A stretch of DNA of 64,000 nt from IMGVR_UViG_3300018080_008436:310001-374000; one strand, 5' to 3'; positions 2,687-51,297 are shown, numbered from the stretch's first letter. Notes: generated by a model not told the origin, from the letters alone. Made by a program: numbers and translations.

Positions 2687-3118
2687 TTATCCTGGCCAAG
2701 GCCAAGACATAGTTAAGTGTATTGAATACATAAATCCGCCACCATCCTTAACGGCGGAATATATAAAGGGGAAAGGCTTCTTTTTAATGTCTGCGATGGC
2801 TTCCTCAAGATAAGCGATAACCTCTTCCTCAGCCTTATTATCTCCAAGTTCTTTCCGCTTTTCGTGCCAACGAATCTGATCCCTATTTGGAACAATCCGA
2901 ATAAACATGTCAGCAGGAATCCTGTCCTCATTACTACAGAACTCAGTCTTAACCCCAATTTTCTTTTCGTTGGCTTTCTTAATAAAATCTAGGATTTCTG
3001 CTTCAGTCATCTCCATAACTTCAGACATCCCAAAATCTTCTTCTGGAATGCCAAGTGACTCTAGGATATGGACATCCTCTGCAATTGCGTGAAAAACGAC
3101 TTTCATTGATGGCTCCAA
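2687..3118 (-). CDS. hypothetical protein
   Basis: ORF track; real start may be an internal Met. Confidence 0.65.
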   Translation of the reverse strand: MEPSMKVVFHAIAEDVHILESLGIPEEDFGMSEVMEMTEAEILDFIKKANEKKIGVKTEFCSNEDRIPADMFIRIVPNRDQIRWHEKRKELGDNKAEEEVIAYLEEAIADIKKKPFPFIYSAVKDGGGFMYSIHLTMSWPWPG

Positions 3119-3508
3119 TTATTTCTGTTTTCTACCAAGCAGTTTTTTAGTCTTCTTTTCCAAATCGTTGAGTTCAGAGAGCATTTTATCTCTTTCTTTA
3201 CCTTTTTTGTTGGCTCTAACCTCACGTTTCATCCTACGGATTTCAGCAAGTGCTGATTTGAGTCTGTCTTCATTGGTTTTTTCTTCAGGCTCTTCGTCAA
3301 GAGCTTCGTCTATATCATCCAAAAATTTATCAATGATATGTTCAGTATCTCCTGCCTTGTTAGCCCACTGTATAACGAGTTCTGTTGCAGTGAAGTTGAA
3401 TTCATCCATAATTCCATCTATGCCAAACTCGTTGTAAGTTTCTTCTATGTTTTGGGCAATTTTCGGAGAGCATTCGTTTTTGATCAAGAATTTATATAAG
3501 CTTTTCAT
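3119..3508 (-). CDS. hypothetical protein with C-terminal coiled coil
   Basis: 129 aa ORF, ATGA overlap. Confidence 0.7.
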   Translation of the reverse strand: MKSLYKFLIKNECSPKIAQNIEETYNEFGIDGIMDEFNFTATELVIQWANKAGDTEHIIDKFLDDIDEALDEEPEEKTNEDRLKSALAEIRRMKREVRANKKGKERDKMLSELNDLEKKTKKLLGRKQK

Positions 3509-3960
3509 CTGTTTTGCTCAATGTATTTTTTCTTGTATCTCAGTGCTACTTCGCGAGTAGTAGGAATTATTTCCCTGTTCCCTTCATTCTTTAATTTCTT
3601 GTATCCTGTTCCCCATCCCTCTTCTGCGAGGCCACATTCTCTGCAAGATCTAAAAGGAGGTCTATGAGAATGATAATCACTGCTTTTCGCTTCAGCTTCT
3701 AAAACTAATTCATGAGGACATTTGTCCATATAAGCTTCTTCAGCTTTTATTCTGAGTTCAGTCAAGGATTTTAATCTGCGTCCCACTTGGTCAATTTTGT
3801 CTTGGACTTGTTGAATGAGAGCCTTTTCAACTGCACCATCACTGATTGCTTCTTGAACAGTCGATCCTAAGTCTGCAATACTTTGGATTTCTTCTGCTTC
3901 TTCGTCTTCGCACCACATTGGGTCAGGATCTGTATCAATCATTTCATTATTTATGGACAT
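3505..3960 (-). CDS. hypothetical protein with possible Zn-binding C/H residues
   Basis: CPHE...CRECG; GAGGT RBS. Confidence 0.7.
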   Translation of the reverse strand: MSINNEMIDTDPDPMWCEDEEAEEIQSIADLGSTVQEAISDGAVEKALIQQVQDKIDQVGRRLKSLTELRIKAEEAYMDKCPHELVLEAEAKSSDYHSHRPPFRSCRECGLAEEGWGTGYKKLKNEGNREIIPTTREVALRYKKKYIEQNR

Positions 3961-3990
3961 AGTCTACCTCATCGATTGTTGGTTAGACTT

Positions 3991-4082
3991 TGGCGGAAGG
4001 AGAGGGATTTGAACCCTCGTGCCCCTTTCAGGACCAACCGCTTTCCAGGCGGTGACGATTAACCAGACTCCGTCATCCTTCC
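3991..4082 (-). tRNA. tRNA-Ser(GGA)
   Basis: Cloverleaf, loop CU-GGA-AA, long variable arm, G73, encoded CCA. Confidence 0.95.
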
Positions 4083-4088
4083 ATATTT

Positions 4089-4346
4089 TTATTTTTCATC
4101 TTGGGTTTTCGTTTCCCCTACTTTGATCAGATGTCTTGGGTTAACTAAAACAAGATAATTTTTAAGTACACAATATCCATTATCCAACATATACTCAATT
4201 TCATACATGGTGTTTATACTCATACTCCAAATACCTGCACCATGCCAGTCTTGATATTTTTGGGGGCGTTTAACAACATCCCCAATTTTCAAGCCGTTAG
4301 GATTGCAAACATCTGCCAGTTCAAGATCCGTTCTTTTCATCTTCAA
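4089..4346 (-). CDS. hypothetical protein
   Basis: 85 aa ORF in an overlapping gene chain. Confidence 0.6.
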   Translation of the reverse strand: MKMKRTDLELADVCNPNGLKIGDVVKRPQKYQDWHGAGIWSMSINTMYEIEYMLDNGYCVLKNYLVLVNPRHLIKVGETKTQDEK

Positions 4347-4599
4347 GTTCCTTGTTGATGAAATTCTTTAACACTGCATTGAACCCAATAGAGACAAGTT
4401 CTGAAAGCTCGTCCTCTGTTAAATCATGGGTTCTGACCCCCTCAATATTTTCTGATGCTTTTACAGCAACAACAGGAAGTCCACTCTCTTTTATTAAATC
4501 TTTTAGTGCAATAAGTATTAACGTATCGATCTCTCCTTCAGTAAGATCGATCTTAAATGGTTCGCCTGCTTCAAGTTTTTCTGGTTCAAGAATTTTCAT
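4321..4599 (-). CDS. hypothetical protein
   Basis: 92 aa acidic ORF, ATGA overlap. Confidence 0.7.
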   Translation of the reverse strand: MKILEPEKLEAGEPFKIDLTEGEIDTLILIALKDLIKESGLPVVAVKASENIEGVRTHDLTEDELSELVSIGFNAVLKNFINKELEDEKNGS

Positions 4600-4826
4600 C
4601 GTTTAATTACCTTCTCAGGCATTTCATCTCTTTTGTTCACAACCATGTACTTCCCATTGCCCTCAAAAATAACAGAAAGACCGCCATTTATTAGCTTAGC
4701 TGTTTCGCATTTGATCATTTCTGCCCCATCTTTTCTTTTGATCATCTCCCCAACATACTCTTCCTGTACTTTTTGATTGATAAAATCTGTTAGATTCATA
4801 TATCTACCTTTTATTTGGCTCTTCAA
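4596..4826 (-). CDS. hypothetical protein
   Basis: ORF track; start probably the internal MNL. Confidence 0.6.
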   Translation of the reverse strand: MKSQIKGRYMNLTDFINQKVQEEYVGEMIKRKDGAEMIKCETAKLINGGLSVIFEGNGKYMVVNKRDEMPEKVIKR

Positions 4827-5016
4827 TCACCATTATACAGCCAAGATTAGTATCAAAGTAACTAAGTCCATATTCTTCCAGAACTTCTAGGACCAGTTCC
4901 CTCATTTTAAGGGAATTTCCTGTAACAACCTCAAAAGGAGGGTCATAATTAAAAATATGAGAGTCAAGTAAAGACCGAACATCTTGATGCTTAACCCCAT
5001 GTAAATCTAACTTCAT
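4804..5016 (-). CDS. stand-alone Smr-domain protein
   Basis: MKLDLHG...VVTGNS...NLG motifs; ATG at 5016 overlaps the nadD TGA. Confidence 0.7.
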   Translation of the reverse strand: MKLDLHGVKHQDVRSLLDSHIFNYDPPFEVVTGNSLKMRELVLEVLEEYGLSYFDTNLGCIMVIEEPNKR

Positions 5017-5666
5017 TTTCCGTGTAACCAACCCTTCCGATTATGAGTCTCTTTCATTTGAACCTCTTCGGAAGGGACATAAAGACAGTGGTCCTGGATA
5101 TATCGTTGAACTTCTTCGTCCAAATATGGCAAAAAGTCTGATCTGCCATGTTTTTTGAAGTGATCTCTTGCCATAGTAGACGAACATTCGGTAATTTTGT
5201 CTTCTACGTCCAAGAAAAGATGGGGAGGATTCTTATACCATCGATATTTCTTCTTCAATTCGATTCCACTTCTTGTTACAACAACAAATTTGGCAATTTC
5301 CCGTAATTTTTTGAAATTATGCCAGTTAATGAAGTTGTTTACGTTGTCAGCACCAATGATAAAACTGATATCAACATCAAGTTGTGGGTCTTTGAGGAGG
5401 GTTTGGACTAATTCGAAGGTCGAACCACTCAGTTCATGTCTAATTTCGTAATCAAATACATGAAGTTTCGGATTTTTTCTGCAAGCGATAGCGCACATCC
5501 TGAGTCTGTGTAAATTAAGCTCTAAATTCTTACCAAATCGATGTTTATTGCAAGGCAAGAGCCAAACTTCATCAAATTTTCCTTTTTCAAGGACAAATTC
5601 AGCTACTTGTATATGAGCAAGTGTTGGGGGATTGAAAGCCCCGCCAAGAATGGCAATTTTAGTCAT
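5013..5666 (-). CDS. nadD: nicotinate/nicotinamide nucleotide adenylyltransferase
   Basis: ILGGAFNPPTLAH, FIIGADN...W, VVTR, SST.AR motifs; GGAG RBS before ATG 5666. Confidence 0.9.
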   Translation of the reverse strand: MTKIAILGGAFNPPTLAHIQVAEFVLEKGKFDEVWLLPCNKHRFGKNLELNLHRLRMCAIACRKNPKLHVFDYEIRHELSGSTFELVQTLLKDPQLDVDISFIIGADNVNNFINWHNFKKLREIAKFVVVTRSGIELKKKYRWYKNPPHLFLDVEDKITECSSTMARDHFKKHGRSDFLPYLDEEVQRYIQDHCLYVPSEEVQMKETHNRKGWLHGK

Positions 5667-5684
5667 AGTTTTCTCCAATGATTT

Positions 5685-5772
5685 TGGCGGAAGAGGTGGG
5701 ATTCGAACCCACGGATGCTCTCACATCAACGGTTTTCAAGACCGCCGCCTTCGACCTCTCAGCCACTCTTCC
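5685..5772 (-). tRNA. tRNA-Ser(UGA)
   Basis: Cloverleaf, loop CU-UGA-AA, long variable arm, GCCA end. Confidence 0.95.
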
Positions 5773-5778
5773 AAATTT

Positions 5779-5915
5779 TGATGGACAAGACGGGATTCGA
5801 ACCCGCAAATCGAGATGCCTCACCCATTGCTTAGGAGAAAAATAACTCCTGCCCATGGTAGCGACATTACTCTTAAGACCAGAGCCTCAACTTTGCCAAT
5901 TTAAGTTACTTGCCC
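5779..5915 (-). ncRNA. tRNA-like RNA with G3:U70/A73 acceptor and ~60 nt structured insert in the anticodon arm
   Basis: Acceptor GGGCAAG/CUUGUCC-A, D arm ACUU/AAGU, T arm GCGGG-UUCGAAU-CCCGU; ends UCA rather than CCA. Confidence 0.7.
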
Positions 5916-5929
5916 GTCTTGTCAAATTT

Positions 5930-6051
5930 TGGCGGATGAGGTAGGATTCGAACCTACACTGTAGCGGTTTCTGTTTTTTGGTTGCTGAAGAGAACCTTTT
6001 TGTCAAGTTCATTTTTTGGACCGCCGTCTCTGCCAGTTGGACTACTCATCC
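5930..6051 (-). tRNA. tRNA with ~45 nt insertion (possible intron) in the anticodon loop; identity uncertain, possibly Leu(CAG)
   Basis: Acceptor GGAUGAG/CUCAUCC-GCCA, D arm, stem GCGGU/ACCGC enclosing a ~52 nt loop ending CAGAA, intact T arm. Confidence 0.75.
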
Positions 6052-6062
6052 ATATTTATAGT

Positions 6063-6090
6063 AATATAGCCTTAAAATAAGAGATTGCAA
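6063..6090 (-). promoter_or_regulatory. sigma70-type promoter inside the tRNA region
   Basis: TTGCAA-N16-TATATT, 12 nt upstream of the 6051 tRNA 5' end. Confidence 0.6.
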
Positions 6091-6109
6091 GTTAAATATA
6101 AAGAAAAAT

Positions 6110-6196
6110 TGGAGGAAGATTGAGGGTTCGAACCCCATCCCTTTCGGAACCATCTGTTTTCGAAACAGTGACAGGAGCCATCCTGCATAATCTTCC
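6110..6196 (-). tRNA. tRNA-Ser(CGA), non-canonical 8/4 fold
   Basis: 8-bp acceptor GGAAGAUU/AAUCUUCC, 4-bp T stem, 6-bp D stem with 4-nt loop, loop UU-CGA-AA, U73-CCA. Confidence 0.85.
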
Positions 6197-6204
6197 ATAG
6201 AAAT

Positions 6205-6294
6205 TGGCGGAAGGGGAGGGATTCGAACCCTCGGACCCCTTGCGGGGTCGCAGGTTTAGCAAACCTGTACTTTCGGCCACTCAGTCACCCTTCC
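6205..6294 (-). tRNA. tRNA-Ser(GCU)
   Basis: Cloverleaf, loop UU-GCU-AA, long variable arm, GCCA. Confidence 0.95.
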
Positions 6295-6304
6295 ATAGGG
6301 GGCA

Positions 6305-7042
6305 TTATACCCCAAAAATCAATAATTCAAAATCGCCATTCTCATGTTCTACGATTGCAGAGCAATGCTCTACCCAATCTCCGCAGTTATAGTAGTCAAT
6401 CCCATCAATTTTTTTGATTATAGGAGAATGAACATGACCACATATAACTCCATCGCAATGATTCTCTTTGGCATACTCTGAAAGGAGACCTTCAAACTCT
6501 CCAACATAAGTAACAGCTTTTTTAAAATTTTCCCTGGCAAACTTTGATAAACGAACTCTTTTCACTCCGAACATCCTTAAACATCTTGCCAGGAACTCAT
6601 TCATTGAAACAAGAGTGTCATAACCCCAACTTCCAACCTTTGAGATCATGACTCCAATTCTTGAAAAAAGAATGAAATCAAACTTATCTCCATGAGTGAT
6701 GTAATACTTCTTTCCAAAACTGTGATAATATGTTTCTTTACAAATTTCCAGGTTCGGATAATGAAAACTGTCCAAAAGTTCCATCATACCATGATCATGA
6801 TTTCCTAAAACATAATGGACGTTACAGTGTTTTGACATTTTTAGAAGTCTTCTAATGACTTCTGTTTGGTTTTTATCCCATTTAGTTCTGTCTAATCTCC
6901 AAAGATCAAAGATATCTCCGATAAGATATAAATTGTCACATTCAGTCTCTTTTAGGAATTTAAGTAGTTCTTTAGATTTGCATCCAACACTGGCCATGTG
7001 GCAGTCTGAGATGAATACTGCTCGGTACTTAGTTTTACTCAT
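6305..7042 (-). CDS. calcineurin-like metallophosphoesterase, UDP-2,3-diacylglucosamine hydrolase (LpxH-like) family
   Basis: ISDCH, GDIFD, GNHD, HGD, GHVH, NCGDW motifs; AGGAGG RBS before ATG 7042. Confidence 0.85.
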   Translation of the reverse strand: MSKTKYRAVFISDCHMASVGCKSKELLKFLKETECDNLYLIGDIFDLWRLDRTKWDKNQTEVIRRLLKMSKHCNVHYVLGNHDHGMMELLDSFHYPNLEICKETYYHSFGKKYYITHGDKFDFILFSRIGVMISKVGSWGYDTLVSMNEFLARCLRMFGVKRVRLSKFARENFKKAVTYVGEFEGLLSEYAKENHCDGVICGHVHSPIIKKIDGIDYYNCGDWVEHCSAIVEHENGDFELLIFGV

Positions 7043-7130
7043 ATTTTTCCTCCTATAAGTAGTAAGGAATAATACTGAGAAAACAGGATAAAACCTACTC
7101 AATAATGAGTTGTTAACCAAGTATTAATAT

Positions 7131-7221
7131 TGGCAGAGGGAGTGGGACTCGAACCCACAAACCGCATTTCTACAGCTTACATGATTTCAAATCAAGCTCT
7201 TCATCCAGCCAGATTCCCTCC
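7131..7221 (-). tRNA. tRNA-Ser(UGA) with degenerate D arm
   Basis: Acceptor GGAGGGA/UCCCUCU-GCCA, loop UU-UGA-AA, long variable arm. Confidence 0.8.
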
Positions 7222-7227
7222 ATTGAT

Positions 7228-7313
7228 TGGTAGCTAGGAGGGGGGTCGAACCCCTACGCCTTTCGGCATTAGTTTCTAAGACTAACATGTCTACCAAGTT
7301 CCATCACCTAGCC
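7228..7313 (-). tRNA. tRNA-Leu(UAG)
   Basis: Loop CU-UAG-AA, variable arm GCC-GAAA-GGC, ACCA end. Confidence 0.95.
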
Positions 7314-7318
7314 ATCTT

Positions 7319-7395
7319 TGGTAGCCTCGCTGGGAGTCGAACCCAGAACATACAGTTTCTAAGACTGCCCTCTCTGCCAATTGGAGTACGAGACC
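7319..7395 (-). tRNA. tRNA-Leu(UAG), short variable loop
   Basis: 77 nt cloverleaf, loop CU-UAG-AA, ACCA end. Confidence 0.9.
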
Positions 7396-7403
7396 ATTAA
7401 ATT

Positions 7404-7489
7404 TGGCGGAAGGTAGGAGATTCGAACTCCTATGCCCGTGAGGACGACAGTTTAGCAAACTGCTGGCTTACCATTCGCCACAACCTTCC
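7404..7489 (-). tRNA. tRNA-Ser(GCU)
   Basis: Loop UU-GCU-AA, long variable arm, GCCA. Confidence 0.92.
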
Positions 7490-7491
7490 AT

Positions 7492-7578
7492 TGGTAGCCA
7501 GGGAGGGCCTCGAACCCTCACTCCCTTTCGGGAACTGGATTTTGAATCCAGCGCGTCTGCCAATTTCACCACCTGGCC
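7492..7578 (-). tRNA. tRNA-Leu(CAA)
   Basis: Loop UU-CAA-AA, long variable arm, ACCA. Confidence 0.95.
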
Positions 7579-7589
7579 AATAAATTTAA

Positions 7590-7657
7590 TGGAGCTAATG
7601 AGATTCGAACTCATCCCCCTGCCTCTATGGGCAGTTCGGCTACCGTCTAGTAACCCC
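7590..7657 (-). ncRNA. 68-nt tRNA-like RNA with G3:U70/A73 acceptor and 6-nt anticodon-position loop
   Basis: GGGGUUA/UAGCUCC-A acceptor, CUGCC-CAUAGA-GGCAG, AUGAG-UUCGAAU-CUCAU; no CCA. Confidence 0.65.
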
Positions 7658-7689
7658 AATTGGTTGCGTATAAACATATAAACAATATT

Positions 7690-7777
7690 TGGTAGTCTCG
7701 GGGAGATTCGAACTCCCACCTCCTTCGCGGAGACAACGACCTCAACGTTGCGTGTCTGCCAGTTCCACCACGAGACC
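7690..7777 (-). tRNA. tRNA-Leu(GAG)
   Basis: Loop UU-GAG-GU, long variable arm, ACCA. Confidence 0.95.
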
Positions 7778-7824
7778 ATTATAAGTGGCCATAACTGACG
7801 AATTAACCCCAGTTTTGGCCGTTT

Positions 7825-7844
7825 ATTCGTAATATATTACGAAT
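7825..7844. repeat. 20-bp perfect palindrome in a tRNA spacer
   Basis: ATTCGTAATATATTACGAAT. Confidence 0.8.
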
Positions 7845-7847
7845 TAT

Positions 7848-7923
7848 TGGTAGCCCTGGTCGGATTCGAACCGACACTTTACGGATTTTAAGTCCGCTCC
7901 CTCTGCCGTTGGAGTACAGGGCC
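7848..7923 (-). tRNA. tRNA-Leu(UAA), short variable loop
   Basis: 76 nt, loop CU-UAA-AA, ACCA. Confidence 0.9.
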
Positions 7924-7928
7924 ATTTT

Positions 7929-7990
7929 TAACTGTTTTTCTCGTTATAGTGGAAAATATAACTGTTTTTCCAGTTTTGTAACTGTTTTTC
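7929..7990. repeat. three 12-bp direct repeats
   Basis: TAACTGTTTTTC at 7929, 7959, 7979. Confidence 0.85.
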
Positions 7991-7998
7991 CAGTAAAA

Positions 7999-8090
7999 TG
8001 GTGAGCAGGGAGGGATTCGAACCCCCAATGTTTACCCAAAGGGGACAGATTTACAGTCTGCCGCAACACCACCATCGTTGCCGCCTACCC
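7999..8090 (-). tRNA. tRNA-Tyr(GUA), extended D stem
   Basis: Loop CU-GUA-AA, G1:C72, long variable region, ACCA. Confidence 0.9.
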
Positions 8091-8094
8091 ATTT

Positions 8095-8182
8095 TGGTCC
8101 TGGTGGTAGGTAACGATCCTACTTGATGCGCAATGATGATAGTTTTACAGACTACCCCGTCTCCTTAACGGTCTACACCAGG
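8095..8182 (-). tRNA. tRNA-Tyr(GUA) with C1:G72 and atypical T loop
   Basis: CCUGGUG/CACCAGG-ACCA, loop CU-GUA-AA, T loop AUCGUUA. Confidence 0.85.
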
Positions 8183-8184
8183 AT

Positions 8185-8206
8185 AAAAAGGTGACTTAAG
8201 TCACCT
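8185..8206 (-). terminator. terminator-like or processing hairpin inside the array
   Basis: AGGTGAC-TTAA-GTCACCT followed by TTTT. Confidence 0.45.
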
Positions 8207-8293
8207 AATGCCTCTGGGTCAGACTTACCAATACCGTCATATTGGGTCCGATAGCCCAGTAAGGACTTTAAGCGTCTGGTTTTCCCCAGACCC

Positions 8294-8381
8294 TGGAGCG
8301 CGGTGAGGGATTCGAACCCTCGCGGACATAAGTCCCATCAGTTTTGCAGACTGTGCCATTAAACCACTCTGGCAACCGCGC
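8294..8381 (-). tRNA. tRNA-Cys(GCA) with long variable arm
   Basis: Loop CU-GCA-AA, U73-CCA, variable hairpin GGAC-UUAU-GUCC. Confidence 0.88.
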
Positions 8382-8387
8382 ATATTA

Positions 8388-8458
8388 AGCACGATGTCGG
8401 AATCGAACCGACTTCTGCGGGTTTGCAATCCGCCGCCTCACCATCTGGCTCATCGTGC
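8388..8458 (-). tRNA. tRNA-Cys(GCA), no encoded CCA
   Basis: GCACGAU/AUCGUGC-U, loop UU-GCA-AA. Confidence 0.88.
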
Positions 8459-8494
8459 ATGGCAATAAAATTTCAAAGATCTCTTGATGTTTTA

Positions 8495-8566
8495 AATATT
8501 CCCGTTCGGTAACATTCGAAACACTCTGAAGTTCAAAACCTTAGAATATTACCGCTCGGTAACATT
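8495..8566. promoter_or_regulatory. two copies of a 22-bp palindromic operator-like site
   Basis: AATATTCCCGTTCGGTAACATT (8495) and AATATTACCGCTCGGTAACATT (8545). Confidence 0.5.
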
Positions 8567-8586
8567 TTGGCTATCAATTAAGCCAT

Positions 8587-8619
8587 AAAAAAACCCCGTT
8601 CGGAAAACCGAACGGGGTT
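8587..8619 (-). terminator. attenuator terminator upstream of the tRNA array
   Basis: 12-bp stem AACCCCGTTCGG-TTTT-CCGAACGGGGTT followed by T run. Confidence 0.9.
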
Positions 8620-8637
8620 GAAAACCGAGTTAAGAAC

Positions 8638-8715
8638 TTACGTTCTCTGGACGCACAACCCCGTCCATCTCAAACTGAGATATGATGAACATAGGCTGAG
8701 CGATAAAGATTTCAT
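8638..8715 (-). CDS. leader peptide MKSLSLSLCSSYLSLRWTGLCVQRT (putative attenuator)
   Basis: ATG 8715, TAA 8640-8638, AGGA RBS; codons 3-15 only Ser/Leu/Cys/Tyr; contains antiterminator strand GGACGGGGTTG. Confidence 0.85.
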   Translation of the reverse strand: MKSLSLSLCSSYLSLRWTGLCVQRT

Positions 8716-8754
8716 TATAAGTTCTTTCCTGTTAAAAATTCAAATTACAACCCT

Positions 8755-8782
8755 ATTATAAACTGGATCTGAAGCTTTTCAA
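8755..8782 (-). promoter_or_regulatory. sigma70-type promoter for the leader and tRNA array
   Basis: TTGAAA-N16-TATAAT. Confidence 0.75.
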
Positions 8783-9084
8783 GTTGAAAACGCAATTATT
8801 TCAAATTTTTCTTTTTCTTTCAGCCATTCGTACTCATGAAGGTAAGGGTTATCGTAGAAAATAATTGGATACTTTCCACCACCAGTACATATTGGGACAA
8901 CATTATAGGATAGCCATTCAGTCGCCTCTTCAAAATCCATCCCTTCTCCCATGAACTTCTGCAACATAAGTTCATAAGAATAAATAAGTTCATCTCTTAT
9001 GGTGATGCCAACAACACAATTGTCCAAATCATCTAGTTTAATGGTCCCATCATCACATTCTTCCAATATTTTTTGAATATCCAT
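8779..9084 (-). CDS. hypothetical phage protein
   Basis: 101 aa, YSYE.M...EEA.EW..YN motif. Confidence 0.75.
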   Translation of the reverse strand: MDIQKILEECDDGTIKLDDLDNCVVGITIRDELIYSYELMLQKFMGEGMDFEEATEWLSYNVVPICTGGGKYPIIFYDNPYLHEYEWLKEKEKFEIIAFST

Positions 9085-9339
9085 TTATGGGCCAACCCAA
9101 ATAATTCCAATGTTTTTACCAACAGTTACTTTTAATTTAACCATATTATTGCCGATTGCAACGATTCTGTTGAATTTGTAGGTAATAATCTCTCTGGCTT
9201 GGATCATGGAGTTACATACGCCTGTTGAAACGGTAAAACAGGTATCAGGACATTCTATGCTTGCTTGAATGCCACGGGGATGAATATTCTCAAATATTAT
9301 GTGAGCTTCTTCTCCACAAACTGGGCATTTCATACTCAT
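9085..9339 (-). CDS. small Zn-finger protein, Lar-like
   Basis: CPVCG...CPDTC. Confidence 0.5.
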   Translation of the reverse strand: MSMKCPVCGEEAHIIFENIHPRGIQASIECPDTCFTVSTGVCNSMIQAREIITYKFNRIVAIGNNMVKLKVTVGKNIGIIWVGP

Positions 9340-9344
9340 GGCAC

Positions 9345-9459
9345 AAAAAAAGTGCGATACATCTCAACATCAACAACTCGAAATAATCGTACAGGCCGCT
9401 AAACCTAACAACTACGCCCCATGGTAGCTAGAATCGCCAACGTTAAAACATACCGCACT
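9345..9459 (-). ncRNA. orphan structured RNA, 29-bp G-U-rich stem with branched head
   Basis: Uninterrupted 29-bp helix (18 Watson-Crick + 11 G-U) only on the minus strand, followed by U7. Confidence 0.75.
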
Positions 9460-9463
9460 AAAG

Positions 9464-10063
9464 CTATTTTATCTTACCTTTCATGATTTTCTTGGCGATA
9501 TCCAAAATATTCTCGTCAATGGGGAATACATCTTTTTTCTGGTCGATCTGACCAAGATGATCTTCAAGTTCATCACTTTCGAACTCATCATCTTCAGGAA
9601 TTACTCCAAAATGCTCTGGAAGAAGTTTCCTTAACAAATCAGTGCTAATCATAATATCCATGTTTTCCAACACAGAGATAATTATGGCATCAATGAACCC
9701 TACTCTACTGATCGCATCAATAATTCCGTCTGAAACTGACGACAACATGATATTAACGTTGATTACTTCATCCCCTATTTCAGGATCATAATGCAAGTCA
9801 ATATAAATACCGCTCAAGAATCGGTCTCCAGCCCTCCAAGTATTTACCATAGTTTTGTATACTTCTACCATATTTGGTGCGTGTGGGTCATCTTCGTTCA
9901 CTTCCAAAACATAATTAATGGATTGGGCAACTTCATCAGATACTGGGAAAAACAATATGCAATTGTTCTGAATCTCTGAAGCTAAAGGCAATACGAGTCC
10001 CCCAGAACTATCTTCGTTGATCTGTGATTGATCAACGCATGGCATTACGTGGAATCTGTTCAT
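9464..10063 (-). CDS. hypothetical protein, weak resemblance to bifunctional nuclease (DUF151)
   Basis: Spacing of GIYID...IDAII...IMI...LL; acidic tail. Confidence 0.45.
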   Translation of the reverse strand: MNRFHVMPCVDQSQINEDSSGGLVLPLASEIQNNCILFFPVSDEVAQSINYVLEVNEDDPHAPNMVEVYKTMVNTWRAGDRFLSGIYIDLHYDPEIGDEVINVNIMLSSVSDGIIDAISRVGFIDAIIISVLENMDIMISTDLLRKLLPEHFGVIPEDDEFESDELEDHLGQIDQKKDVFPIDENILDIAKKIMKGKIK

Positions 10064-10353: not shown

Positions 10354-10610
10354 ATGATATCCAAAGTGTTTTGGGTTCTTTTGGCGACAGTTCCGTATTT
10401 GGAACCGTATCGAGTGGCAGAGAAACGATAATAATCTTTAATCTTCTGCTGATAATCTTCGTCAAAAGAATTGATGTCAACCCTACCTTCTAACACATTA
10501 ACTGCATCAATTCGGAGTTGTTGGACATCGGGAGGAACCCCAAGTACATCATCACCTATCTGCTCAGGCCCAATAGGTTCTTGGGGATACAGTTGATTTT
10601 GATTCGCCAT
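10350..10610 (-). CDS. hypothetical protein
   Basis: 86 aa, GAGG RBS. Confidence 0.65.
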
Positions 10611-11622
10611 ATGCCTCTCTCAAAGCTTTTACCAAGCCTTCCCTTTTATCTTTACCAATATACTTCGAGGGAATCTGAGGCAATACCTTCACAAAAATAG
10701 TCCCACCATTCAAGAAGTCAACTTTGATCTCATAGAATTTTTCAGTGTCCCAATCTGACTTTAGTTGAAACGTGACATCCTTCTTCTTGAACAGTTTAAC
10801 GGTAATGTTTTCTTCAGCTAAAATCTTATCAATTGTAACTTGAACAGATAGAAAAAGATCCGATCCTTTCTGAACAACCCCATCTTGCTCAGAAGGATAA
10901 TTAACAACAACGTAATGAGACCCAGTATAAGTAGAGTCATCCGACTGATAAATCGTATTTCCCTTGTCTTTGAGTCTCATACTGGCATTATGATTGATGT
11001 TTGGGGGGATCTGTATTCTCGTTTTTGAACGAGTTTGCATGTAGCCAACTCCTTTGCATTTCTCGCAAGGCTTGAATCTTTTTCCACTTCCACCACAGGC
11101 TCCACAAATGTTTATATATTGGAACCCAGGTTGATTTACGTGTTGTTGCCCTTGACCATTACAAGTAGGGCAAACAATTTCTTTTCCAAGAAATGCCCCA
11201 GTTGTTTTGCAAGCATCGCAAGCAACAACCTGTTGTATAGTGTGGTTTTTCTTACAACCAAATATCGCTTCTGCTAGAGTAATGCTAATAGATGATCTCG
11301 AATCTGGATTGATCCGTTTTCTGGAAGGCTGATTGCTTCGTTGTCCCCCAAAGAAGTCTTTGAAAACACTCCAAGTTCTTGAAGTCCCAGAATGCGGATG
11401 TGGTTGTTGATTTCCTATCGTACCAAACCTGTCATATTGAGCTTTCTTTTGGGCATCCGAAAGGACTTCGTAAGCTAAAGAGATCTCTTTAAACTTCTCT
11501 TCTTTTGCCTCATCGCCAGCATTTTTATCAGGATGGTATTCCTTAGCTAATTTTCGATAAGCTTTCTTAATCTCATCCTGTGAAGCTTCTCGCCCCACCC
11601 CTAATACTTCATATGGATTCAT
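10564..11622 (-). CDS. dnaJ: DnaJ chaperone
   Basis: J domain with HPD, four CxxCxGxG-type repeats, C-terminal domain. Confidence 0.92.
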
Positions 11623-13931
11623 CTGGAACGCTTTCTCTTTCTTTTTCTAATGACAATGTCGCCACTTTTATCAGCAGTTATAGTCAGAGTATAACTGTAC
11701 TGATCGATATCCTCAATTTCAAGGATTGTGTCTGCAACAAGTGGCTCAACTTGTTTTGAAATAATTCGATCAAGTGACATGGCATTCATACCATGTTCAG
11801 AGTCATGATATTTAACAATAGCTTCAGCTATCTTCGCCCCAATCTTAATACTAATGTATTTGTGATTAACGCGCTGAGCGAATTCTGTAAGTCTCATTTC
11901 TACAATGTCTTGAAGATTCTCTTTCGTCAGTTCCACAAATGGTACGAAGGCATCGACACGATTAACGAATTCTTCACCATAAGATTTCTTACAGAAGTCA
12001 ATTAAACGAGTTCTCTCATTTTCCACAAGGCTTTTTTTACCTTTTGAATTAAAACCCATGGAAGCTGACTTAGAAATATTCAAACCGAAGTTACCTGTCA
12101 TGATGAAGAAGATATTTTTGCAGTCAACCTTTTCACCTACTGCACTAGTAATGGTTCCTTCTGACATAACTTGTAAAAACAGCCTCATGACTTGTGGATG
12201 AGCTTTCTCAATTTCATCGAGCAGTAGGATGCAATAAGGTCTTCTTTTGATTTTGTCAACTACAACATCAACATCCTTGAAACCCACATATCCTGGTGGA
12301 CTCCCAATTATTTTGCTAATTGAGTGTTTTTCAGAGTATTCTGACATATCAATCTTAATCAGATTTTTCTCGCTTCCAAAAATTGCTTGAGATAACTGTT
12401 TGGCGGTATAAGTTTTCCCTGTTCCACTTTGCCCTCCAAAAGTAAGAACTCCAATGGGTCTGTCAGGGTTTCTAACTCCGCTATAAGCATTTCTAAGTAC
12501 CCTACAAACGCTTGTAACGGCTTCTTCTTGTCCAATTACTCTTTTCTTCAGAAATTCCTCAGTCTTTTTAATTCTTTCATGTGTATCCCACATGATAACT
12601 TCTAAAGGAACTCCGCATTGTTTACTGATGACTTTGGCAACATCATCTGAGGTAATTATGGGAGTGTGTTCGTCATTTTCCGACCAAGCGTTTTGAGCAC
12701 ATGCAGTATCCATACAGTCAATTGCTTTATCTGGGAAGTATTTGGTTGGTCTGTATCGTTTGGTCAGATTGATAATGGAGTCAATAGCATCGTTTGAGAT
12801 CGTGCATTCATGATACTTTTCAAAACGATCTTTGATTCCCATCAAGATTTTTTTGACATCTTCATCTGATGGTTCATCAATATTGACAACTCCAAAGCGT
12901 CTTGATAATGCCCCATCGTCAACAAAATGTTTTTTATATTCTTGATGAGTTGTGGCCCCAATACACTTCAACTTCCTTGCAAGAGCAGGTTTAAGAATGT
13001 TTGCGGCATCCATAGCGGAGCCAGCACCTCCTGCACCTACAATCGTATGAATTTCATCAATAAACAGAATGACATCTGGATCATCTTCAACGGCCTTGAT
13101 TAGATCCTGTATCCTTTTTTCAAAATCTCCACGATATTTTGTCCCTGCAACCATTCCTGCCATATTGAGGGAATAAATCCTACACCCTCTGAGTTTGGGA
13201 GGGACAGCATTACTGATGATTCTTTGAGCGATGCCCTCAACAATAGCAGTCTTCCCGACTCCAGCTTCACCAACTAAAATTGGATTTGATTTTGTTCTTC
13301 TGCAAAGGATTGTAATTGTTTCTTCGATTTCTGAATCTCTTGAAATTATCGGATCAAATTCTCCGTTGTTTGCCAACTCTGTCATATCAGTGCAGTATTG
13401 GTCAATAATAGAGTCTTTGGTCTTTTTCTTCGAACTTCTTGAAGTTTTAACTGTGCTTTTGTGAGATTTGCTACTTAAGATCTCTTCAATGCAACTCTTG
13501 AACTCCTTGCATTCTTTGGAAATGATTCTCTTAAGATTCAGGTGAAGATCCATGATAGATATGAACAGATGTCCAAGTCCAACGATTTTGTGGCCATTAT
13601 CGCGAGATAACTTATCTGCCGCTTTGCACACTTCAACGATTTCTTTTGAAATATTAATTTCGTCAAAGGTAACCCCAGAGTCCCCACTCTCATTTTCCTT
13701 TTGTCTATTGGAAAGGAGTCTCTTAAACTTCTTAACGCAAGTGTCTAAATCAACTCCATGCTCGTGCAACGCTAATGTTACAACGTTTTCTCCAGTGAGC
13801 AATGTTCCAATCAAGAATGACTCTGGATATAGGCAATCCACATGAGCATCAATACTTGCGGCTTTAGCAAATACGATCATGTGTAGAACATCGTTACTAA
13901 ACCTGTCATACATCTTCTGGTTTTCTGACAT
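11619..13931 (-). CDS. ClpA/ClpC-family AAA+ ATPase
   Basis: Clp N domain, [46 protein letters not shown]. Confidence 0.93.
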
Positions 13932-29379: not shown

Positions 29380-30027
29380 GCAAAAATACGAAAATTCAAC
29401 AAAACCCATTTCCTCAGGTACATTTTCATATCTAACAACAAACCCATTTTCGAGCAATTCATAGACATAAAGTCTTGGAAAATCGAATGGGCCTGGATAC
29501 TCGTTTGAAGTTGTGCTACTGTCACTACTTAAAGATTGGCTTGAACTACTGGATGAGTCTTTTGAGCTAGAACTGGACGTACTGTCTGAACTAGGAGTAT
29601 CTTCGCTACTGGTGCTGGAAGAATCTAATGAGCTTGAACTAGAGGAATACTCTTGTGAGCTTGAACTAGGAGATCCTAAGCTACTTGAAGAAGATTCGCT
29701 TGCCTCTGTTGAGCTACTACTGCTTGATGAGTCTTTTGAGCTTGAAGAACTGGATTCAGTAGAAAGTGAAATTGAAGTAAGACTGGATTCAGAAGTTGGG
29801 CTTGATGAGCTTGATGAAGATATTCCCCCTATTGATAAACTTGATTCACTAGAAGAACTATATTCAATAGCTGGATTATAAATAGGTATAGAGGCCCATG
29901 TGATAATGGCACTCGTTATAGGATAACCAGTTATGATAGTAATATATCCATCTCCTGAACCAGCGTAAGCCTTCTTTCCTGTCAGGGGATAGTTATCAGA
30001 TCTTCTTAAATCGTATCGTCTTATCAT
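29374..30027 (-). CDS. Ser-rich protein
   Basis: Long poly-Ser tract between short globular ends. Confidence 0.8.
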   Translation of the reverse strand: MIRRYDLRRSDNYPLTGKKAYAGSGDGYITIITGYPITSAIITWASIPIYNPAIEYSSSSESSLSIGGISSSSSSSPTSESSLTSISLSTESSSSSSKDSSSSSSSTEASESSSSSLGSPSSSSQEYSSSSSSLDSSSTSSEDTPSSDSTSSSSSKDSSSSSSQSLSSDSSTTSNEYPGPFDFPRLYVYELLENGFVVRYENVPEEMGFVEFSYFCL

Positions 30028-33000
30028 TCTGGTAGCCTTTTGCTTATTGGAACGTTTATAATAGTTCCATCACTTGACCTCGGAATCCTTTTGGAAATAT
30101 TATACATTACTCCAATATGATGGATAACTGCGACCTCATCAGTGAAATTTGTTACTCTTGTTGCGACTCTGAATGATGACGCAAAGAACAAATCCATAAA
30201 TATAGTTGTCGATGGGTCCTGTGGAGCCAAGAATGTAATCGTCCCTTCAATATTATTGGCCGCGTATTCTGAAGAATCAATCAAAGTCCCTTGAGTCTCA
30301 TCCAGTCCAAGTCTATAAACATTCAGTGTAAAGTTTGCATTCCATCGACCATTAACAGCCGTATAAGTTTTGAAATCTTCTGTTTGTAATAATTCATTAA
30401 ACCTTGTGGGCAATATCGTATGTTGATCTGGAATGATGTTATAGTACTCTTCTGGTCTCAAGGATTCACTTTGAGTCATAAGGTATTCTACAGTAGAGTT
30501 CTCTGGGACATCTGCTTCGCTAGTTATATGAATTGAAGAAATGTATTCGTCATCGTCCAAGTTCACTGAGATTGGTTTGAAGAAAATAACGAATTCTCTT
30601 GGGTTGTAATAATCAACTTCTACTCCACCGTTAATTACTGGGGTTTGGAAATCAGAGTTTCCAACGAGTTTGATCTCATATTGAATATATTTCTGCAAAG
30701 CATCAATTGACTTGTCATGTTCATAAGGAATTGAATAGTCAATGAAGTCAGTCCAGTCAGAATATGTAATCCCATCTACACTAGTTCTTATTCTGTAGGT
30801 TACTTCTGCTCCTGTAGGAACGGTAACTCCCGCTATTACAGTAGTGTCTGGGATATTGGGATTCTCAAAGACAATCGTCCCAGTAAGAGTTGTTGTGTTA
30901 ATTTGTAAATTATTCCCTGATGCGATCTCATTACAAATACTATTTATTTGGGCTGAAGTGCTGTTATCTAAGTAGAATACAGACGATCCTCCCTCCTCTC
31001 CATATTTCTCAAGCAAGATAGAGTCAGATGCATGGGGTTGCCCTAATTGAATCGGAATTATCTGAACTTCACCCTCTCCATCAACAAAGTTGACAGTTTG
31101 TACAGCTTGATTTAAAGAATTCTCGGATGTATTCTCGTCGCCATCTGTGACAATGATTACAAATTTCTTATAGTCTTTGTAATCTTCGTTATTTGTTTGA
31201 TATTGGACCAATTGCTCTGCGGCTCTTTTTACTGCATCATGCAATTGACTTGCACCAAAGAAACCAAATGAATCGATTGCAGAGGCCAAGTAGATATCAT
31301 CACTTGTTAACTCTGGGACTCTATGTCTAATGGATGGATACCATTGTTGAATACTGGCCACATTGATGATGAATTGTCTTTCGGAAAGATAACCATCAGA
31401 CGTTGCAGAAACTCTGGCCTTAATATGCATGTAATCTCTTTTTACTCCTGCTCCCATTACCAAGAATCCAGGATCAGTTCCTTCTTCGTCTTCTGGTGGT
31501 TTGTATGGAAGTAGTTCAACAGTAATACGAGATCCATCAGTTACAATCTCTTCTGGTACGACAATTACATTCCCGATATCGTCAACGTACTGATACTCAG
31601 GGAACTTCGCATAAACACGAATATCAAAACCTCTTTCAGTTTCTTCGATATCGGTAGCAGTATAGAATGTTGCGGACGTATCTTCACTTCCAGCAGGGCC
31701 AGCAACTCCTGATTGAGATGAAGCTTCTTCTTCGTCCTCATAATCTAATATAAAGATTGGTTCACCATTATTAAGGTCGTTCCCCAATTCTATCTTAGTA
31801 GCAAGTCGTCTTGCCAATTCAGTTCCAGCAGGCACTTCGAGCGTAGCAAACATCATTCTGTTGCCTTCTGGATTCACAGGTTCATTTTCATATGGTTGCG
31901 AATTTGTGGGATCGTATCTAACTGTTCCATTTACAACAAAGTCTGTATCAATATTCTTTGTTGGAAGAATGTTCGTCATGGCAACACATCTGACATTATG
32001 AGAGTGACTTAACTGCTCATCTGATTCATAGCTGGTAAACGTATGAGTATGATTGCCAATTGAGCCGAACAAATTAATCGTACTTGTCGTAGTGCCATTC
32101 CCATTGATATCTAAGCTAATTACATGAGTGTGACTGCTTACTACTTCACCTCCGCTATCTTCGTCATATACGTCTGAACGAATTAAACCAGACTGAACAG
32201 AATAGTCAGACAAAGAAATGTCTTGGTTGGGACCGACAATCAAACAACCATCAATCAGGTTTCTTGTATCCTTCATCTGAGGTAACTGTCCACCAGAAGC
32301 ATTACTCTCTTCGCAAATTCCACTTTCAAATGTCACTTTTGGCAATGGATACTCTATTACTGACTCAAAATCGGTTCCCTCATTAATTGTGAGTTGATTG
32401 AGAATTGGTTGGCCTTTCCAAGTCAATTCAGCATAGATTCTTGCAGTAGTAACTCCATCTCTGACAAAATTAGTCTCATATTTTAGCTCAATACCAAGGG
32501 GTTCCACATATTGTTGTAGTGGTTTTGGAATTCTAATGCCACCACCAGGAGTGGGGAGTGGCCTTCCATTGGCGATTTCTCCTCTTCTGTATCCCCCTTC
32601 TTCCTTTCTGTAAGAGGTATATGCTTCAACCTGACTTAACCAAGGCTCTCTAAAGATCTCACGTTCTCCAAGAGGTTGCTGATGTCCAATATTTTTGTTT
32701 TTAGGAATGGCTGTTAACTCAAGCCTATCTGTTTGCCAAGTGGACCTTCTAGGGTTTGAATTGAATGTTGTTAAAGTTCTTGGTAAATCATTCGGTTGTC
32801 CCAAACCTCTAAGCCTTTTTACACCATCCTCTCCAACGAAAATGTCAGTTGGGTTGAAGTCATCTTGTAAATCCACTACAATTTTTGCGTTTGGATTACT
32901 TTCTCCATCAGCGTAGATAGGTGTCAGAGCGTCTTTTGCATAAAAAATGAATGAATCATCCTCATCTCCAAAGTTCTGACCAGTCAAGCTAACGATCCTT

Positions 33001-37940: not shown

Positions 37941-37942
37941 CT

Positions 37943-48400: not shown

Positions 48401-48499
48401 TGGAGTTGTTCCATGGCCTGTTCGGAAACCTCCCAAACGGTCAGTAGTTATGGCAACTCTGCCATTAATATGTTCTTTTGTTATTAATGCTACATACAT
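45494..48499 (-). CDS. LamG-like domain + long Ser/Glu repeat + LRR domain protein
   Basis: VGYWKLNE, FSI.CWVKP, W.YLVVTYD; (SESSSSQ/E)n; C.NNSLTTLD.S repeats. Confidence 0.8.
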   Translation of the reverse strand: MYVALITKEHINGRVAITTDRLGGFRTGHGTTPITFWRTFLKWAGQKLPREVVHVGVVKSIETYYENYIDSIEGVTYREIDTEYIKTFGADEFDVIYFIGLPDDFAEEIPDILEEHVADGGGLILESPDEEGEIEILSSIDSIEVSSVQRPTYDLAFWTAAGFNSDLYTANFSSSFMMEIEQANVPSTWEILKSNIETITIPVDDEDTLAQFDYDNSSIQEFGMSFVVGMKDGLVTLVEGENVLFSSSSSSSSSSSSTIEETEWDLCDNIVGYWKLNENYGNSFLWDSSGDFSQIGTLQQNGVAINTSTRSVVGKVNNAIVLDNLLQQNIEVPAGTKLNFTDGVSDQSFSIVCWVKPYSITGTQYIASKDGVWDLYVENGIVKFDLINGINTRSISSSQSLLKGKWNYLVVTYDTSDIKIYLRNVDISGSQVDVGYVTMANSNSEFYMGSSSVGNWFHGVLDNFLIVDKVVNSIEREGMWNMGRGTEDCSAVLKYTSSSDSSSSSLDSSSSSSLGESSSSSSSFGYSESSVSSGGVSESSSSQSNSSQSDSSSSSEGYSESSSSQSESSSSQSESSQSLSSSSQSESSSSQSESSSSSGGYSESSSTSSAGYSESSSSQSESSSSQSESSSSQSESSSSQSESSSSKSESSSSQSESSSSQSESSESESGSSESESSSSESESSSSESESSSSSEEYSESSSSESESSSSESESSSSESESSSSEGYSESSSTSSEEYSSSSSGIGHPIMTIVTESASPDSIFFALGGGGAVGNTDWDMDDETKYFDTSSVTHTYTDGEPSHTAFASGISPTSPTQVVVNDSDITSIDISQLTSVNNVSITSNPLLTSLDLTNQSLFVLSVPSNGLTSLAVEDHPDLFQLNCGSNSISSLDLSLLVDLEILHCSNNSLTTLDVSNCTVLEDLECRNNSLTTLDLSSNTSLDDVDCRNNSFSATAVNNILIDLDGNGLSNGIVNTLGNTAPTGAGLTAKSNLQGKGWTVTTD
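46270..47010 (-). repeat. Ser-rich low-complexity coding repeat (~21-nt degenerate unit), boundaries approximate
   Basis: Encodes SESSSSQ/SESSSSE heptads. Confidence 0.8.
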
Positions 48500-50938: not shown

Positions 50939-51297
50939 TATTCTTTACCTTTTAATTCTACGAAACCTGGAGGGAGATCGACAGGAACACTAGGTTTATG
51001 ATCCTTAAAATCTTTATTCCCCGAATCCTGTTCTCTATCCTTGATCATAACGTCATTTGGTCCTTGAGCAGTCATATCAACTTTTTCTCTTATGACAACA
51101 CAAAAATCAAGATCTTCTATCTCTGGGATTTGACAATTTGTTCCAGAAATGACAAACTCGATTTCCCCCTCATCTGTTTTAATAACATCTGCAAAATGAT
51201 CAATTGTCATTGCTTCAGAAACCTCAACCTCTTCTGAATCAATTAATGATAGAGATTTATTAAATTTTATGATAGTTATCGCCATAATTATCTCCAA
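50938..51297 (-). CDS. hypothetical protein
   Basis: ORF track; likely start MAITI. Confidence 0.65.
   Translation of the reverse strand: MEIIMAITIIKFNKSLSLIDSEEVEVSEAMTIDHFADVIKTDEGEIEFVISGTNCQIPEIEDLDFCVVIREKVDMTAQGPNDVMIKDREQDSGNKDFKDHKPSVPVDLPPGFVELKGKE

Follow-up and report, generated by a model that had tools for sequence, protein, structure and literature searches.

A 64,000-nucleotide (nt) stretch of DNA, IMGVR_UViG_3300018080_008436:310001-374000 (hereafter the window), carries on its minus strand a short leader open reading frame (ORF) and a strong terminator in front of a phage tRNA array. This element is very probably a ribosome-mediated (leader-peptide) transcription attenuator that gates the array. 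Sequence comparison identifies it as part of a conserved, modular family of attenuators in front of phage tRNA arrays, whose tRNA genes probably stay off unless the cell decodes the leader codons badly. The evidence that bears directly on this proposal is the anatomy of the leader, its conservation, the covariation of its RNA structures, and the correspondence between leader codons and array tRNAs. The contig to which the window belongs comes from a huge phage and measures 476 kb in IMG/VR and 525 kb in the JGI assembly.

For fifty years, textbooks have described leader-peptide attenuation. The classical attenuators of the trp, his, leu, and thr operons respond to charging, and some are multivalent, such as those of ilvGMEDA (Leu/Val/Ile) and thr (Thr/Ile). 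In the full-text literature searched, attenuation is otherwise known only from amino-acid biosynthesis and synthetase genes and a few resistance or transport genes.

A leader of Ser, Leu, Cys, and Tyr codons precedes the tRNA array

The upstream part of the unit consists of the following features.

8751-8783, minus strand: promoter of the CTTGAAAAGC...TATAATAGGG class (-35 at 8782-8777, -10 at 8760-8755), conserved in orthologs
8724-8730, minus strand: Shine-Dalgarno (SD)-like AGGAAAG, 9-12 nt 5' of the ATG, as read from the sequence
8638-8715, minus strand: leader ORF of 25 codons plus TAA, predicted peptide MKSLSLSLCSSYLSLRWTGLCVQRT; ORFs of 25-29 codons occur in 8 diverged relatives
8671-8709, minus strand: putative regulatory tract, codons 3-15, all Ser, Leu, Cys, or Tyr
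8684-8702, minus strand: segment 1 (anti-antiterminator), the tract portion paired to segment 2 in the minimum free energy fold
8652-8669, minus strand: segment 2, with the antiterminator strand as its core (8666-8656)
8632-8647, minus strand: small predicted hairpin between segments 2 and 3; the UAA stop codon falls within its loop
8585-8620, minus strand: intrinsic terminator (segment 3, 8620-8608; loop; segment 4, 8603-8592; U-run, 8591-8585)

The promoter, TTGAAA-16-TATAAT at 8782-8755, matches the sigma70-type consensus at 11 of 12 positions. In its extended form it occurs at four sites in the phage contig, every one upstream of a tRNA array, and a looser pattern returned no additional site in that contig. 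An AGGAA-type motif occupies the equivalent position in the orthologous leaders.

In none of its six frames does the 64-kb window contain another run of codons for Ser, Leu, Cys, or Tyr (S/L/C/Y) as long as this 13-codon tract, and no other run touches all 10 anticodon classes found in the array; the remaining long runs are low-complexity, Ser-rich stretches that touch 3-6 classes. Cognate codons account for 13 of 14 in this leader (binomial P = 5e-8 against the amino-acid usage of the window's long ORFs). Read from 8458 down to 3991, the array encodes tRNAs for Cys (GCA, two genes), Tyr (GUA, two), Leu (UAA, GAG, CAA, and UAG, the last twice), and Ser (GCU twice, CGA, UGA, and GGA).

An earlier, sequence-only reading of this locus had placed the promoter, the 25-codon ORF, the terminator, and the tRNA genes where we find them, and all of its coordinates proved correct on the minus strand. 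It had also claimed that codons 3-15 are confined to S/L/C/Y (13 of 13 are), that the downstream tRNAs serve only these amino acids (a tRNA search returned the anticodons it named), and that each of the ten anticodon types of the array has a cognate codon in the tract, which a codon scan bore out. Its comparison with the layout of trp/his/thr-type attenuators also holds in every anatomical respect: an ORF with an SD behind a promoter, a cluster of cognate codons, a terminator, an antiterminator, and 1:2 pairing are all present. The departure lies in the cargo, where the first downstream genes are tRNAs and not biosynthesis or synthetase genes, a property that is not part of the definition of the mechanism.

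Leader codons follow the tRNA content of each array

Syntenic contigs were retrieved via homologs of a ClpB-like protein and of a 199-amino-acid (aa) neighbor, and paralogous units by scanning IMG/VR for the extended promoter; one further unit, L073, came from a scan for the terminator-junction motif. The resulting set of 13 units comprises the window, 8 orthologs, L051, L056, and L062 from the same phage, and L073 from an unrelated contig. At the syntenic place, each of the eight distinct, diverged relatives has a tRNA array that begins with tRNA-Cys and continues with Tyr, Leu, and Ser (the Tyr gene of the L044 array was read by eye). In the six loci reached via ClpB homologs, ClpB is 66-81% identical; L025 and L030 were reached via the 199-aa neighbor (52-59% identity), a protein that shows 48-59% identity across the ortholog set. 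The nine orthologs share a common descent; independent support comes from the four paralogous units, the unrelated contig, and the gain of Phe described below.

L051, same phage: leader MKKRVEIAIAVVAVAVVADGQGFSALSG (V/A/I); tRNAs Val UAC (two), Ala UGC, Ala GGC, Ile UAU
L056, same phage: leader MYATTKTTKTTKTTKKRVASGGLLS (T/K); tRNAs Thr GGU, CGU, and UGU, Lys UUU (two) and CUU
L062, same phage: leader MNNLNNIFRFFSHL (F, pheM-like); tRNAs Phe GAA (two)
L073, unrelated 111-kb phage contig: leader MKIINNILEVLEQLQEQLLMT (L/E/Q); tRNAs Leu UAA, Glu UUC (two), Leu CAA, Gln UUG

Among the five unit types, the true assignment of leaders to arrays is the single best of 120 permutations. Cognate codons are enriched in 12 of the 12 units tested, and in complete arrays every anticodon has a cognate codon in its own leader. 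The correspondence also extends to an amino acid gained within the ortholog set. The L039 array includes tRNA-Phe GAA, and three Phe codons stand in the tract of its leader, MKNLLFSSCYLFSSLYFSVMEREFANT, whereas the leaders of arrays without tRNA-Phe have none there; the L030 leader holds one Phe codon, and its array is cut off after tRNA-Tyr. The expectation of the sequence-only reading that leader codons would covary with the anticodon set in homologous loci was therefore confirmed in three ways, by the orthologs with their Phe gain, by the paralogs, and by L073.

An attenuator with such codons might instead report amino-acid supply, charging, or general translation capacity and coupling, and not particular tRNAs, with the match to the array being secondary. 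To a stalled ribosome, an absent tRNA and an uncharged one look alike, and the tracts of some units include non-cognate codons, both of which would fit this explanation. However, extra tRNA does not cure amino-acid starvation, and the wiring makes sense mainly as a tRNA-supply loop. Moreover, the amino-acid grouping of the leaders tracks array composition and not biosynthetic families, and coverage at the level of anticodons is complete in every complete array. We consider a sensor of supply or charging unlikely.

Competing RNA structures and their covariation

The terminator has a 12-bp stem (8619-8592) with 8 G-C pairs, followed by seven U residues up to 8585, and its hairpin has a predicted energy of -22.7 kcal/mol. 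The full leader folds at -57.2 kcal/mol (z = -5.6 versus dinucleotide shuffles). In this full-length fold, 8702-8684 pairs with 8669-8652 (the 1:2 helix) and the terminator is present, an arrangement that recurs in six of six tested orthologs. The sequence-only reading had also pointed to an 11-bp pairing between 8666-8656 and the 5' arm of the terminator at 8620-8610. This complementarity of 11 nt is real: the duplex reaches -20.6 kcal/mol, and none of 300 shuffles is as good.

A stalled ribosome was modeled by masking 30 nt around the A-site codon and folding the nascent RNA up to the terminator loop. With the mask on codons 5-12 of the window leader, 8666-8656 is predicted to pair with 8620-8610 (10-12 nt paired), and the same masks leave 9-12 nt of the terminator arm paired upstream in all six tested orthologs. 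The four extra units (L051, L056, L062, and L073) likewise show a stall-dependent antiterminator in masked folds, and antiterminator pairing was found in 13 of 13 units. Folding with and without a ribosome mask, the check that had been suggested for this locus, thus gives the predicted contrast: the mask frees segment 2 for the antiterminator, whereas the full fold contains the 1:2 helix and the terminator. As modeled, the window RNA follows the 1:2, 2:3, 3:4 logic of classical attenuators. The hairpin around the stop codon is predicted in the stalled-state folds of six of six leaders, and the sequence of its stem is different in each.

Pair counts were taken from an alignment of six leaders (A2), and per-sequence duplex calculations were used for all nine; a MAFFT alignment of the nine leaders (A3) misplaces three coding regions and was set aside. 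In the six-leader alignment, 93% of the cells of the terminator are paired and five pairs have changed on both sides, a result reached by 0 of 500 shuffles. For the antiterminator, 85% of cells are paired (slid controls, at most 61%) and three pairs have changed on both sides. The best duplex between the post-tract region and the terminator 5' arm ranges from -12.8 to -25.4 kcal/mol per leader, and in eight of the nine leaders it is beaten or equaled by at most 2 of 300 shuffles. In addition, segment 2 of a given leader pairs better with the terminator arm of that leader than with the arms of other leaders; only 2 of 5,000 permutations do as well.

The orthologous units keep the order of promoter, SD, ORF of 25-29 codons, strong terminator, and first tRNA-Cys, and examples of their leader peptides are MKSLSYNLSCLYLSLRYAGLCAQRT, MNNLSYSLLSLSSCYLYSSDRNGSCVLKF, and MKTLSSYSLSSLSCYLSSKGAGLCAQMF. 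The C-terminal parts of these peptides are fairly alike (GLCVQRT, GLCAQRT, and GLCVQKF). This likeness could indicate that the short ORF encodes a functional micropeptide; alternatively, the ORF could be spurious, with the hairpin acting as a constitutive leaky terminator or insulator and the codon bias deriving from the peptide or from RNA composition, the tract being pyrimidine-rich and overlapping RNA pairing. Yet the conserved C terminus overlies segment 2, a stretch conserved as RNA, and within the tract the composition is kept while the positions shift among orthologs. Over codons 3-18 of the nine leaders, S/L/C/Y/F codons make up 122 of 144 (85%) in frame versus 49 and 51 of 144 (34-35%) out of frame; the out-of-frame composition is ordinary. 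A micropeptide would predict neither V/A/I, T/K, F, and L/E/Q leaders before matching tRNAs nor Phe codons that arrive with tRNA-Phe, and the coevolution of the antiterminator with the terminator argues against a constitutive terminator. An explanation by micropeptide, leaky terminator, or composition is accordingly very unlikely.

Some relatives have the syntenic site without an array, namely, L040 and L042 (ClpB identity, 59-62%) and L018 and L019 (72-74%). In the parts examined, these loci have no comparable leader-terminator unit; L018 has no strong terminator at that site, and no unit of leader and terminator was seen in the stretch of L019 that was read. An apparent tRNA 3' end remains at the syntenic site of L019 (~4862-4895), which suggests a recent loss of the array.

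From the terminator to the first tRNA gene

Two kinds of element lie between the terminator and the array of the window.

8495-8566, no strand assigned: two 22-bp palindromes (8566-8545 and 8516-8495), consensus AATNTTNCCGNNCGGNAANATT, 50 bp apart in the interval from terminator to boxA-like element
8464-8483, minus strand: boxA-like element AGATCTTTGAAATTTTATTG, directly 5' of the first tRNA gene

The spacer from terminator to first tRNA is 8-42 nt in most units, 26-74 nt in the relatives, and 126 nt in the window, where no promoter-like site was found at the scan threshold. A spacer of 8-42 nt has no room for a separate promoter, and therefore the tRNAs should depend on read-through. We also considered the conserved spacer motif as a promoter and rejected it: the spacing of the hexamers does not fit, and the sole sigma70-like match (L016, 8579-8606) would start transcription inside the tRNA.

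In 11 units, the boxA-like motif occupies a fixed position ahead of the first tRNA, at -22 to -39 nt; in L056 it follows directly 3' of the first tRNA. Its identity to the rrnB boxA region of Escherichia coli is 12-17 of 20 positions across units (L051, 17; window, 13); shuffles reach 13 or more identities in ~4% of trials and 14 or more in <1%. In rrn operons, polymerase that has passed boxA becomes processive and Rho-resistant. By analogy, we infer that the phage element may act in Nus-type antitermination. Both stand at the start of a long untranslated RNA operon; the phage element differs in its place behind a terminator that appears to be regulated and before tRNAs.

The palindromes occur only at this locus of this phage; they may represent paired operator sites or a small insertion, and in their 3' halves they are similar to the 3' arm of the terminator. 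These palindromes 3' of the terminator, together with a weak Rfam match to a PyrR site (RF00515, 8692-8585; 28.9 bits versus a gathering threshold of 54, E = 0.7), might point to a leader RNA that senses tRNA in the manner of a T-box or binds a protein (PyrR-like, TRAP-like, or a repressor at the palindromes), with the ORF being incidental, but this is very unlikely, since no T-box or other Rfam family reaches threshold (for the T-box, no match at E <= 1 in window 3000-10000), the palindromes are absent from relatives and paralogous units, the ORF keeps its start codon, SD, frame, and stop, and the codon enrichment is confined to one frame.

Proposed mechanism and points that weigh against it

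We propose that the leader-peptide attenuator would work as follows. Host RNA polymerase would start at the sigma70-type promoter, and a ribosome would begin to translate the 25-codon leader. When Ser, Leu, Cys, and Tyr codons are decoded fast, the ribosome would reach the stop codon between segments 2 and 3, where it would keep segment 2 from segment 3, or segment 2 would re-pair with segment 1 behind it; the 12-bp terminator would then form and transcription would end 5' of the tRNAs. When a cognate aminoacyl-tRNA is scarce, the ribosome would stall in the tract on segment 1, leaving segment 2 free to pair with the 5' arm of the terminator, and the polymerase would read through. It might then pass the boxA-like element, gain Nus-type processive antitermination, and transcribe the Cys, Tyr, Leu, and Ser tRNAs, and the new tRNAs would relieve the stall and close a negative feedback loop. 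The phage would use this module at least four times, once per amino-acid group.

Several observations weigh against this proposal. Leader translation, the stall-dependent switch, boxA function, and the physiological trigger are deduced from sequence, and translation and regulated read-through in particular depend on such deduction. In the masked folds of the window, a ribosome on codons 14-16 covers segment 2, and no antiterminator forms. Because stalls there mask segment 2, the one TTG codon of the tract (Leu CAA) is poorly placed for sensing. The ribosome-free nascent fold already prefers the antiterminator in four of six orthologs; if no stall occurs, termination must therefore come from kinetics together with the ribosome at the stop codon. 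Register is weakly conserved in the anti-antiterminator and the outer stem; in the segment 1:2 helix, 75% of cells are paired. Several tracts contain non-cognate codons, such as AAC, CGT, and AGA (Asn, Arg), and some hold codons for which the phage has no tRNA, such as the UCN codons in L044. Downstream, weaker promoter-like sites lie inside the array (7982-7955, 6090-6063, and 5925-5898), as do two protein genes and a terminator-like hairpin at 8206-8189 (a 7-bp stem, then TTTTAT) between tRNA-Cys and tRNA-Tyr genes. This hairpin may mark a site of RNA processing, or it may be a weak terminator that boxA-type antitermination overrides. Given the internal promoter-like sites, the hairpin, and the protein genes, the distal tRNAs (beyond ~7130) may be expressed separately.

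These points also bear on the resolution of the proposed sensor, which the sequence-only reading had placed at the level of isoacceptors. That claim stands insofar as every anticodon is covered in complete arrays; it is weakened by the codons without a phage tRNA and by the last three codons of the window's tract, which in the masked folds are too near segment 2 for a stall there to release it.

The tRNA array and its genomic context

The array in the window is made up of the features below.

7134-8458, minus strand: first tRNA block, with Cys GCA (two), Tyr GUA (two), Leu UAA, Leu GAG, the tRNA-like gene 7657-7587, Leu CAA, Ser GCU, Leu UAG (two), and the tRNA-like gene 7222-7134
6305-7120, minus strand: metallophosphoesterase gene within the array (Pfam Metallophos, E = 1.6e-11)
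5685-6294, minus strand: second tRNA block, with Ser GCU, Ser CGA, the tRNA-like genes 6051-5933 and 5915-5782, and Ser UGA
5013-5678, minus strand: cytidylyltransferase-like (NadD-like) gene within the array (Pfam CTP_transf_like, E = 2.3e-16), syntenic in relatives
3991-4082, minus strand: distal tRNA-Ser GGA

Rfam added four tRNA-like genes that ARAGORN had missed (7657-7587, 7222-7134, 6051-5933, and 5915-5782). The first, of 71 nt, has a CAUAGAG loop and no encoded CCA. The tRNA-Sec model gives the second its best score, albeit below threshold (38 bits), and the anticodon loop of this gene, UUUGAAA, corresponds to a UGA anticodon. The other two belong to a conserved family of tRNA-like genes of ~116-134 nt whose anticodon arm contains or adjoins an insertion of at least ~45 nt. 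Further members occur in L016 (10998-11119), L018 (16047-16163), L019 (4952-5067 and 5795-5913), L025 (13649-13766), L032 (7547-7664), and L034 (13261-13381), and thus even in relatives without the main array. Among the aligned members, a set that does not include 5915-5782, a hairpin and the motif TTCAGCA are conserved within the insertion. In its intron mode, ARAGORN gave inconsistent anticodons for these genes, and we assigned none; the insertion may be a non-canonical intron, or the family a new tRNA-like RNA.

Some canonical genes have unusual shapes as well. Some tRNA-Leu genes, at 76-77 nt, lack the long variable arm usual in bacterial tRNA-Leu, whereas the variable arm is extended in tRNA-Cys genes, which measure 78-88 nt. 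Genes of these shapes lie at 7395-7319, 7923-7848, and 8381-8294 in the window and also occur in L016, L023, and L034. These shapes might matter for recognition by synthetases or tRNA nucleases. Between tRNA-Tyr and tRNA-Leu UAA, three direct copies of GAAAAACAGTTA (7990-7929) overlap the weak promoter-like site at 7982-7955. Outside the window, a tandem pair of terminators stands 5' of the tRNA-Phe genes of L062 (7540-7380).

Upstream of the array, the window encodes a ClpB-like AAA+ chaperone (770 aa) and a full DnaJ (10564-13931). The ClpB homologs of several relatives are longer (~1100-1150 aa) and contain intein/homing-endonuclease domains (LAGLIDADG and Hom_end; P0007, P0042, P0045, P0047, P0050, P0056, and P0099). 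Two giant ORFs, of 2,638 aa (30024-45484) and 2,513 aa (45494-54563), are almost without Pfam matches, and adjoining ORFs of ~1000 aa have Laminin_G_3 and FG-GAP repeats. These giant ORFs and their neighbors are probably tail-fiber or adhesin-like proteins of the huge phage.

Among cultured phages (INPHARED), a DNA search with the leader region gave nothing useful, and neither the 199-aa neighbor protein nor the L073 unit had a match. A 101-aa upstream ORF has no homologs outside the window's own phage, and in the six contigs that carry it the leader differs by a single base, C8634G. Relatives of the embedded metallophosphoesterase in IMG/VR are non-syntenic and without tRNAs. A scan of bacterial genomes with the 19-mer junction was uninformative, with 28 scattered matches and no rRNA or tRNA nearby in the 15 loci checked.

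Relation to known systems and implications

The pheST attenuator of E. coli is the closest single relative of the phage units. In pheST-ihfA (pheM), as is proposed for the phage, a leader peptide controls a component of translation for the same amino acid. Moreover, pheM and the Phe leader of the phage, L062, have 14 residues each, begin in the same way, and share IFRFF, and a terminator follows both. The cargo of pheST, however, is synthetase mRNA, whereas that of the phage units is tRNA genes, whose product would feed back directly on the sensor; in addition, the pheST attenuator senses one amino acid, while the unit of the window would sense four.

The ilvGMEDA, thr, and trp attenuators combine a short ORF, clustered codons, mutually exclusive 1:2, 2:3, and 3:4 helices, and a terminator, and in tests of the phage units all of these features were found. 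Those operons encode biosynthetic enzymes, whereas the phage codon sets follow array content and not a pathway. A further difference concerns the end of the leader: in trp, the ribosome at the stop codon covers segment 2, while the phage stop codon lies in the small hairpin between segments 2 and 3. T-box riboswitches likewise couple translation-related genes to the state of tRNA via a switch between terminator and antiterminator. However, they bind uncharged tRNA directly, without translation, through a specifier loop and the conserved T-box sequence; in the phage, what appears to be conserved instead is a translated ORF.

The mechanism is classical, and the new part is the cargo, tRNA genes. 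The sequence-only reading knew of no description of attenuation for a tRNA operon, and our full-text literature searches likewise returned none for control of tRNA-gene transcription by a leader attenuator of the decoding-sensing kind proposed here. Phage tRNAs such as those of T5 replace host tRNAs cut by defense nucleases such as PARIS and retron effectors (PMC11464382, PMC11555353, PMC10264068). That work on T5-type counter-defense, which extends to variants of the anticodon loop, concerns the tRNAs themselves, whereas the subject of the window is the control of their transcription. Bacterial Schlafen tRNA nucleases also act in a defense setting (PMC13056530), a plausible context for phage tRNA attenuators.

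The physiological trigger might be plain supply feedback or a host defense that cleaves tRNAs; that host anticodon nucleases in particular act as the trigger is speculation. It is possible, though doubtful, that huge phages operate a modular decoding-surveillance network of leader-gated arrays, in which the codons of every leader reflect the anticodons behind it, decoding is gauged one codon family at a time, and only the missing tRNAs are transcribed; in its strongest form, this would be an inducible counter-defense against tRNA-cleaving immunity. If so, it would face anticodon nucleases, PARIS, retron effectors, and bacterial Schlafen nucleases, and the odd tRNAs of the array (Leu without a long variable arm, Cys with one) might escape such nucleases.

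In an attenuator of this kind, the regulated product would be the very molecule whose shortage the sensor detects, a direct supply-demand loop in a virus. The units would also be compact natural sensors of decoding capacity per codon family and could serve as reporters. Their signature of short ORF, terminator, boxA, and tRNA array could predict which tRNAs a phage expects to run short in its host, and it gives a testable answer to the question of why and when phages express their tRNAs.

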